Assembly: GCA_964234715.1 (NCBI GenBank)
Contig: OZ174287.1
Direction: 5' to 3' (one strand)
From: Podarcis melisellensis
Lineage: Eukaryota
DNA: 64,000 bases
Shown here: positions 44,049-44,120 of the stretch, piece by piece
How the letters are laid out: each line of letters opens with the position of its first letter
Numbering within the stretch: the first letter of the stretch is position 1
Made by a program: the position numbers and the translations under genes
The notes under the pieces: generated by a model
Database searches by the model: none
Seen by the model: the letters and a program-made list of their open reading frames with translations, nothing else
Told to the model about the DNA's origin: nothing

Positions 44049-44120
44049 TTCGGTCCATGATGAGACACCATGCACCACTCTGACTAAAGTGATGCGACGA
44101 CCTATAACGCTGAGACCGAA
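44049..44120 (+). ncRNA. Intronic box C/D snoRNA, copy B (KPNB1 intron 8); same 18S Gm1328-type guide
   Basis: Perfect 7-bp terminal stem TTCGGTC/GACCGAA; C box ATGATGA 44057-44063; guide CCATGCACCAC 44068-44078; D' CTGA 44080-44083; C' GTGATGC 44089-44095; D CTGA 44110-44113. Confidence 0.9.

Follow-up and report, generated by a model that had tools for sequence, protein, structure and literature searches.

A predicted box C/D snoRNA pair in KPNB1

The element at positions 44049–44120 of the 64-kb stretch of Podarcis melisellensis DNA analyzed here (hereafter, the window) is very probably an intron-encoded box C/D snoRNA, which appears to carry only one guide, and, as predicted from its sequence, the orthologue of the chicken gene GGgCD25a. 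A paralogue that was absent from the initial annotation lies approximately 5 kb further upstream, in another intron of the same host gene, KPNB1. The two elements are referred to below as copy 1 (44049–44120) and copy 2 (39037–39114), and their parts are listed together with the host exons in Table 1.

Table 1. Positions in the window of the two predicted snoRNAs, their parts and the coding exons of the host gene.
Feature	Position	Strand	Remark
KPNB1 coding exon E1	29672–29711	+	begins at ATG
KPNB1 coding exon E2	31274–31332	+	
KPNB1 coding exon E3	37124–37306	+	
KPNB1 coding exon E4	37671–37871	+	
KPNB1 coding exon E5	38812–38964	+	directly upstream of copy 2
Box C/D snoRNA copy 2 (predicted), chicken GGgCD25b orthologue	39037–39114	+	KPNB1 intron 5
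Copy 2 C box GTGATGA	39050–39056	+	
Copy 2 guide	39061–39071	+	same as in copy 1
Copy 2 D´ box	39073–39076	+	
Copy 2 C´ box TTGATGC	39080–39086	+	
Copy 2 D box	39100–39103	+	
KPNB1 coding exon E6	40553–40612	+	
KPNB1 coding exon E7	43653–43742	+	
KPNB1 coding exon E8	43895–44005	+	directly upstream of copy 1; from translation and splice sites
Box C/D snoRNA copy 1 (predicted), chicken GGgCD25a orthologue	44049–44120	+	KPNB1 intron 8; boxes and stem read
Copy 1 terminal stem, 5´ half TTCGGTC	44049–44055	+	perfect complement of 44114–44120
Copy 1 C box ATGATGA	44057–44063	+	read directly
Copy 1 antisense CCATGCACCAC	44068–44078	+	followed by a single T at 44079 before D´
Copy 1 D´ antisense element including terminal T	44068–44079	+	predicted to pair with 18S GGUGGUGCAUGG
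Copy 1 D´ box CTGA	44080–44083	+	read directly
Copy 1 C´ box GTGATGC	44089–44095	+	last base departs from consensus A
Copy 1 spacer or D-side antisense region	44096–44109	+	no predicted target
Copy 1 D box CTGA	44110–44113	+	read directly
Copy 1 terminal stem, 3´ half GACCGAA	44114–44120	+	7-bp perfect complement of the 5´ half
KPNB1 coding exon E9	from 45134	+	

The sequence of copy 1 contains the features by which the box C/D class is recognized. A RUGAUGA-type C box and a CUGA D box are joined by a perfect 7-bp stem, internal D´ and C´ boxes are present, with one departure from the consensus in C´, and an antisense stretch of more than the 10 nt that the class asks for at least adjoins D´ and is directed toward a known methylated rRNA site. 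The initial annotation had described the four boxes and the perfect stem at these positions, as well as an 11-nt antisense element one nucleotide before D´; on direct reading, both descriptions proved exact. Folding of the 72-mer gave a z-score of −2.9.

Chance does not account for the element either. When the 64-kb window was scanned strictly on its two strands for C/D elements (RTGATGA, CTGA 45–105 nt downstream and a terminal stem of 5 or more uninterrupted pairs), copy 1 was the sole match, while 100 shuffles gave a mean of 0.06 elements per window, or 0.02 if the 7-bp stem was required. Further, the 15-mer composed of the guide and the D´ box occurred twice in the window, against an expectation of 0.00, with the occurrence in copy 2 at 39062–39076.

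But for two bases, copies 1 and 2 have one sequence in common that starts at the GGTCC preceding the C box and runs through D´, and they coincide again at CTGAGAC, while they differ elsewhere; the bases that tell one from the other lie in the C box and in the C´–D region. The terminal stem of copy 2 consists of 3 bp (GTC/GAC), a small internal loop and then 7 bp (AAATCCA/TGGATTT).

Host gene and intronic position

The translation of the exon ending at 44005 was recognized as what we take to be importin beta-1 (KPNB1), and short KPNB1 probe peptides matched exon 8 and its neighbouring exons in the window. The exons, which were read one by one, were located by means of these peptides together with the splice sites, and all eight exons from E1 to E8 have AG/GT borders and consistent phases. 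Counted in coding exons from the one bearing the ATG, copy 1 lies in intron 8 (44006–45133), in agreement with its earlier placement, 43 nt past the 5´ splice site and approximately 1.0 kb before the 3´ splice site. Copy 2 starts 72 nt past the 5´ splice site of intron 5. Mammalian intronic C/D snoRNAs are typically found about 70–80 nt from the 3´ splice site, so that the position of copy 1 counts to some extent against its reading as a snoRNA, but long external stems compensate in those that are distant from it. Both lizard copies are far from the branch point, and both have extended terminal stems.

Three further observations were made on the host gene. The window holds the 5´ part of KPNB1 on the + strand (29672–45134), including an intron 2 of approximately 5.8 kb, and the gene runs on beyond 47.4 kb. 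A long CT-dinucleotide tract in intron 7 (approximately 43826–43890, + strand), just upstream of the exon 8 acceptor, reads as repeated SL codons in one frame; it is probably a microsatellite and would at the same time serve as the polypyrimidine tract. Finally, two segments of intron 8 (approximately 44926–44963 and 44988–45026) were matched by several unrelated contigs of two related genomes at 88–90% identity and with raised summed depth, which suggests that 44926–45026 holds a fragment of a dispersed repeat.

Predicted 18S rRNA target and number of guides

The D´ antisense element of copy 1 can form a 12-bp duplex with the 18S segment GGUGGUGCAUGG, which is present in the chicken 18S text; this duplex comprises 11 Watson-Crick pairs and a possible terminal G·U pair at T44079. 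The fifth base upstream of D´, C44075, faces the fourth base of GUGGUGCAUGG, that is, the second G of its GG. This is the same G that the initial annotation had singled out by the D+5 rule as the equivalent of Gm1328. The D´ guide of copy 1 is thus predicted to direct 2´-O-methylation of the 18S G corresponding to chicken G1286, human G1328 and yeast G1271. Since the paralogue in intron 5 has the same guide, this site would be redundantly covered.

The D-side regions were searched for a second target. Five 8-mers, complements of the D-side regions of both copies, were absent from the chicken 18S/28S text, in a search that overlooks words broken between two lines but that recovered the positive control GGTGGTGCATGG. 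In addition, the 14 bases that precede the D box in copy 1 are, by eye, unlike their counterpart in chicken GGgCD25a, and the sole change found inside copy 1 in any contig, at 44098 in one contig of run X1, falls in this D-side region. For these three reasons, copy 1 is most likely a single guide, in agreement with what was stated for the chicken gene (PMC2653536).

With regard to copy 2, its D-side region has the motif CCCAT in common with chicken GGgCD25b, at an equal distance from the D box, and the plant snoZ221/snoR21b model has CCCAUU. CCCAT was considered as the relic of a second guide and rejected, as the fifth base upstream of D is T in one and G in the other and the register of the plant model differs. 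Because of this difference in the fifth base, a conserved second target for copy 2 and chicken GGgCD25b is unlikely. The alignment of copy 2 to the plant model (39045–39107) takes in the D-side CCCAUU with the register off by 2 nt, and this may reflect either chance or what is left of a second guide in an ancestor.

Orthology with the chicken GGgCD25 pair

A snoRNA gene present in two copies in KPNB1, GGgCD25, was published for chicken by Shao et al. (2009, BMC Genomics 10:86; PMC2653536), with GGgCD25b in intron 4 and GGgCD25a in intron 7. It was described there as carrying a 12-nt 5´ (D´) guide to 18S-G1286, with snR40, plant snR21 and human U32A/B as its homologues, and its sequences and duplexes were given in the supplements (PMC2653536). 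The chicken gene is a computational prediction that stands outside the set reported by RT-PCR and has no oligonucleotide in the primer file (PMC2653536). Cognates of GGgCD25a and GGgCD25b were scored as present in chicken and lizard and as absent in human, mouse, opossum, platypus and frog, and the human double guide U32A/B was cited to illustrate that two functions united in one human RNA can be held by separate single guides in chicken (PMC2653536). A literature search for 'GGgCD25' returned no other paper, the SNOntology paper mentions neither U32 nor the KPNB1 locus, and nothing specific was found in the literature on lizard snoRNAs.

These data bear on statements of the initial annotation. 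The idea that the element represents an undescribed or newly relocated family has to be given up, as GGgCD25a/b were published in KPNB1, with lizard cognates, in 2009 (PMC2653536); the initial annotation had foreseen such an outcome as one that would cost the novelty and leave the call intact. Its remark that KPNB1 was not familiar as a mammalian snoRNA host agrees with the table of that paper, in which the four mammals scored have no cognate at the locus (PMC2653536). The functional link that it proposed to the import of ribosomal proteins is speculative. The family is therefore already known, and what is added here are the exact coordinates, the second copy, the one-to-one orthology and the non-detection by Rfam.

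The chicken and lizard genes were compared by short patterns and inspection. The 12-nt duplex drawn for chicken GGgCD25a (PMC2653536) is that of copy 1, the antisense string and its distance from D´ being equal in the two. A 35-mer of chicken GGgCD25b, which spans 12 bases of 5´ flank, the C box and the guide, matched the window only at 39037–39071, with 2 mismatches. A 27-mer of chicken GGgCD25a, from C box to D´, matched both lizard copies with 1 mismatch each (26/27 in copy 1). Neither chicken-derived pattern matched the window anywhere but at these two sites, and 0.00 matches were expected.

Further segments in common were seen by eye. Copy 1 and chicken GGgCD25a have in common GACACC before the guide, the C´ box GTGATGC and CTGAGACC, while copy 2 and chicken GGgCD25b have in common AAATCCATGGTC, GAAA before the guide, TTTGATGCAT and CTGAGACTTGGATT, along with the 5´ flank (from the pattern match) and the start of the 3´ flank (by eye). 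The order of the genes, with b upstream and a downstream, and their spacing of three introns are the same in chicken and lizard. The intron numbers differ, being 4 and 7 in chicken versus 5 and 8 here by coding-exon count, an offset that probably stems from one uncounted 5´ exon in the chicken annotation of 2009.

The D-side region and the D´–C´ loop differ between the lizard and chicken genes, and copy 1 further departs from chicken in its C box (ATGATGA versus GTGATGA) and in the outer stem pairs. By eye, the inner GGTC/GACC of the stem is kept, whereas the outer pairs have changed and yet still pair in the lizard, a pattern that appears to be what a selected stem looks like.

Taken together, the lizard pair occupies KPNB1 introns three apart, carries a D´ guide to 18S-G1286 and resembles GGgCD25 beyond the guide, and copies 1 and 2 are accordingly predicted to be the one-to-one orthologues of chicken GGgCD25a and GGgCD25b, respectively. 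Given the separate matches to the two chicken genes and the same order and spacing, the duplication would therefore predate the bird–lizard split, with both copies kept since.

Comparison with close relatives

Two DNA data sets under other organism labels cover the whole of intron 8 and differ from the window by 22 and 20 substitutions (approximately 2% divergence), in a comparison that was restricted to intron 8 (44006–45120) and hence clear of conserved exon sequence. No change was found in either relative from 44006 to 44165. As 72 nt would be expected to hold about 1.4 changes in each relative (P ~0.07), the invariance of copy 1 is weakly informative, and it fits constraint to that extent. 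In the contigs that carry the paralogue in these relatives, the flanks match those of copy 2 in the window by eye.

Just 3´ of copy 1, a small variable patch was observed at 44166–44176, with a 5-nt deletion at 44168 in one contig and with substitutions at 44166, 44172 and 44176 in the relatives, following 160 invariant nucleotides. A search of sequencing runs for this stretch returned none that is recorded as RNA. A 183-nt contig from run X1, which was guessed to be RNA, spans 44023–44210; as its length exceeds that of the snoRNA, it may be derived from DNA or from pre-mRNA. A second run of this kind gave no contig here.

Proposed mode of action and alternative explanations

The observations comprise the layout of the element, its host gene with the introns concerned, a second copy, matches to each of the two chicken genes and invariance in two relatives; from these we infer a course of processing, snoRNP assembly and methylation by analogy with established box C/D biology. 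The snoRNA would be released from KPNB1 intron 8 after splicing, and exonucleases would trim the RNA back to the 7-bp terminal stem that unites the C and D boxes. The C/D and C´/D´ motifs would then assemble with 15.5K/SNU13, NOP56, NOP58 and fibrillarin, the D´ antisense would pair with 18S GGUGGUGCAUGG, and fibrillarin would 2´-O-methylate the G that faces the fifth base ahead of D´.

That copy 1 is a mere chance constellation of short intronic motifs has a negligible probability. The shortness of the individual boxes is all that speaks for it, but the rarity of such elements in the shuffled windows, with or without the 7-bp stem, the double occurrence of the 15-mer and the orthologous matches to two published chicken genes all argue against this reading, which they already refute. 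A decaying, non-expressed relic, with the methylation left to the paralogue in intron 5 or to another guide elsewhere, is very unlikely. It would account for the departure of the C´ box from the consensus, copy 2 would supply the redundancy, and no run recorded as RNA was returned for the stretch; however, all four boxes, the full guide and the perfect 7-bp stem are intact, copy 1 is unchanged in two relatives, and the near identity of its C-box-to-D´ segment to that of GGgCD25a at the corresponding intron is unexpected under neutral drift since the bird–lizard split.

It is also highly improbable that copy 1 gives rise to a genuine snoRNP RNA whose main or additional role lies outside 18S rRNA, through a D-side element acting on another RNA or through an effect on KPNB1 splicing. 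In line with such a role, no complement of the D-side region turned up in the chicken 18S/28S text, and both copies lie unusually near the 5´ splice site (43 and 72 nt). However, the D-side region of copy 1 is by eye not conserved between chicken and lizard and holds the only change within the element, whereas the conserved part is the 18S guide, which argues against a conserved second target. An intron-encoded box C/D snoRNA with a single D´ guide to 18S rRNA is thus the reading that we retain.

Relationship to other snoRNA families

No match was obtained anywhere in the window at Rfam gathering scores. Accordingly, the Rfam search that the initial annotation had proposed did not recover either copy at any gathering score and yielded only sub-threshold C/D matches. 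In E-value mode, copy 1 gave full-length C/D alignments of 19–24 bits, all sub-threshold, among them 21.2 and 22.4 bits to the plant snoZ221/snoR21b and fly snoMe18S-Gm1358 models, respectively. Copy 2 scored 28.4 bits with the plant model (E 2.6e-4, its best match), 21.4 bits with the fly model and 15.7 bits with snR40. The gathering scores of these three models, RF00300 (snoZ221/snoR21b), RF00533 (snoMe18S-Gm1358) and RF01201 (snR40), are 44, 50 and 50, respectively. The top-scoring Rfam match of copy 1, SNORD79, has the boxes alone in common with it and was set aside as not meaningful.

The fly RF00533 and plant RF00300 families read this 18S site from D´ as well, and in the 5´ half of their consensus sequences the guide and D´ form the same string, CAUGCACCACUCUGA. 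Similarity to the fly, plant and yeast families is confined to the boxes and the guide, which function alone would constrain, and common descent with these families is therefore not established. On these comparisons, the element appears to resemble the fly and plant D´-type guides in function and layout and to be no recognizable member of an Rfam family.

Membership in the SNORD32/SNORD33 family was examined and rejected. The score with RF00133 (Z195/SNORD33/SNORD32) was 19.3 bits versus a gathering score of 44, in an alignment that was out of register, with exon 8 sequence as the 5´ part and D´ taken as D. Nor does the layout correspond, as the 18S guide is at D´ here and the D-side is without an 8-mer complement in chicken rRNA. 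In human U32A, the antisense upstream of D is predicted for 18S G1328 and that upstream of D´ for 28S A1511, and in a human SNORD32A/SNORD51 double knockout, methylation of G1328 dropped from 92% to 6.5%. Human U32A is hosted in RPL13A. Human SNORD32A therefore has a D-box guide, the RPL13A host and a second guide to 28S, in contrast to the D´ guide, the KPNB1 host and the lack of a 28S guide here. The opposition drawn earlier between a D-box reading in human and a D´ reading in this DNA was correct, as SNORD32A reads G1328 from its D box.

A more far-reaching reading, which we regard as rather unlikely, is that the KPNB1 pair may be the surviving descendant of an ancient D´-type guide (snR40, plant R21, fly Me18S-Gm1358) that was lost in mammals and replaced by the unrelated U32, whose D-box guide would have arisen from its RPL13A neighbour U33 by a register shift of 2 nt. 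The D´ placement, the E-value of 2.6e-4 between copy 2 and the plant model, and the fact that mammals and frog have no cognate there fit such a hand-over; the present data fit common descent and target-imposed convergence alike. If true, this would document how one rRNA methylation passed from a guide to another that is not homologous to it.

With nothing in the window at gathering score, Rfam-based pipelines miss both KPNB1 snoRNAs, and for this reason the guide for a conserved 18S methylation is probably missing from reptile gene sets. The locus is further a clear case of amniote lineages using guides of different construction for one rRNA modification, with a single guide at D´ hosted by KPNB1 in sauropsids versus a double guide, hosted by RPL13A, that reads the site from its D box in mammals. 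This contrast between amniote guides had already been made for chicken in 2009 (PMC2653536).
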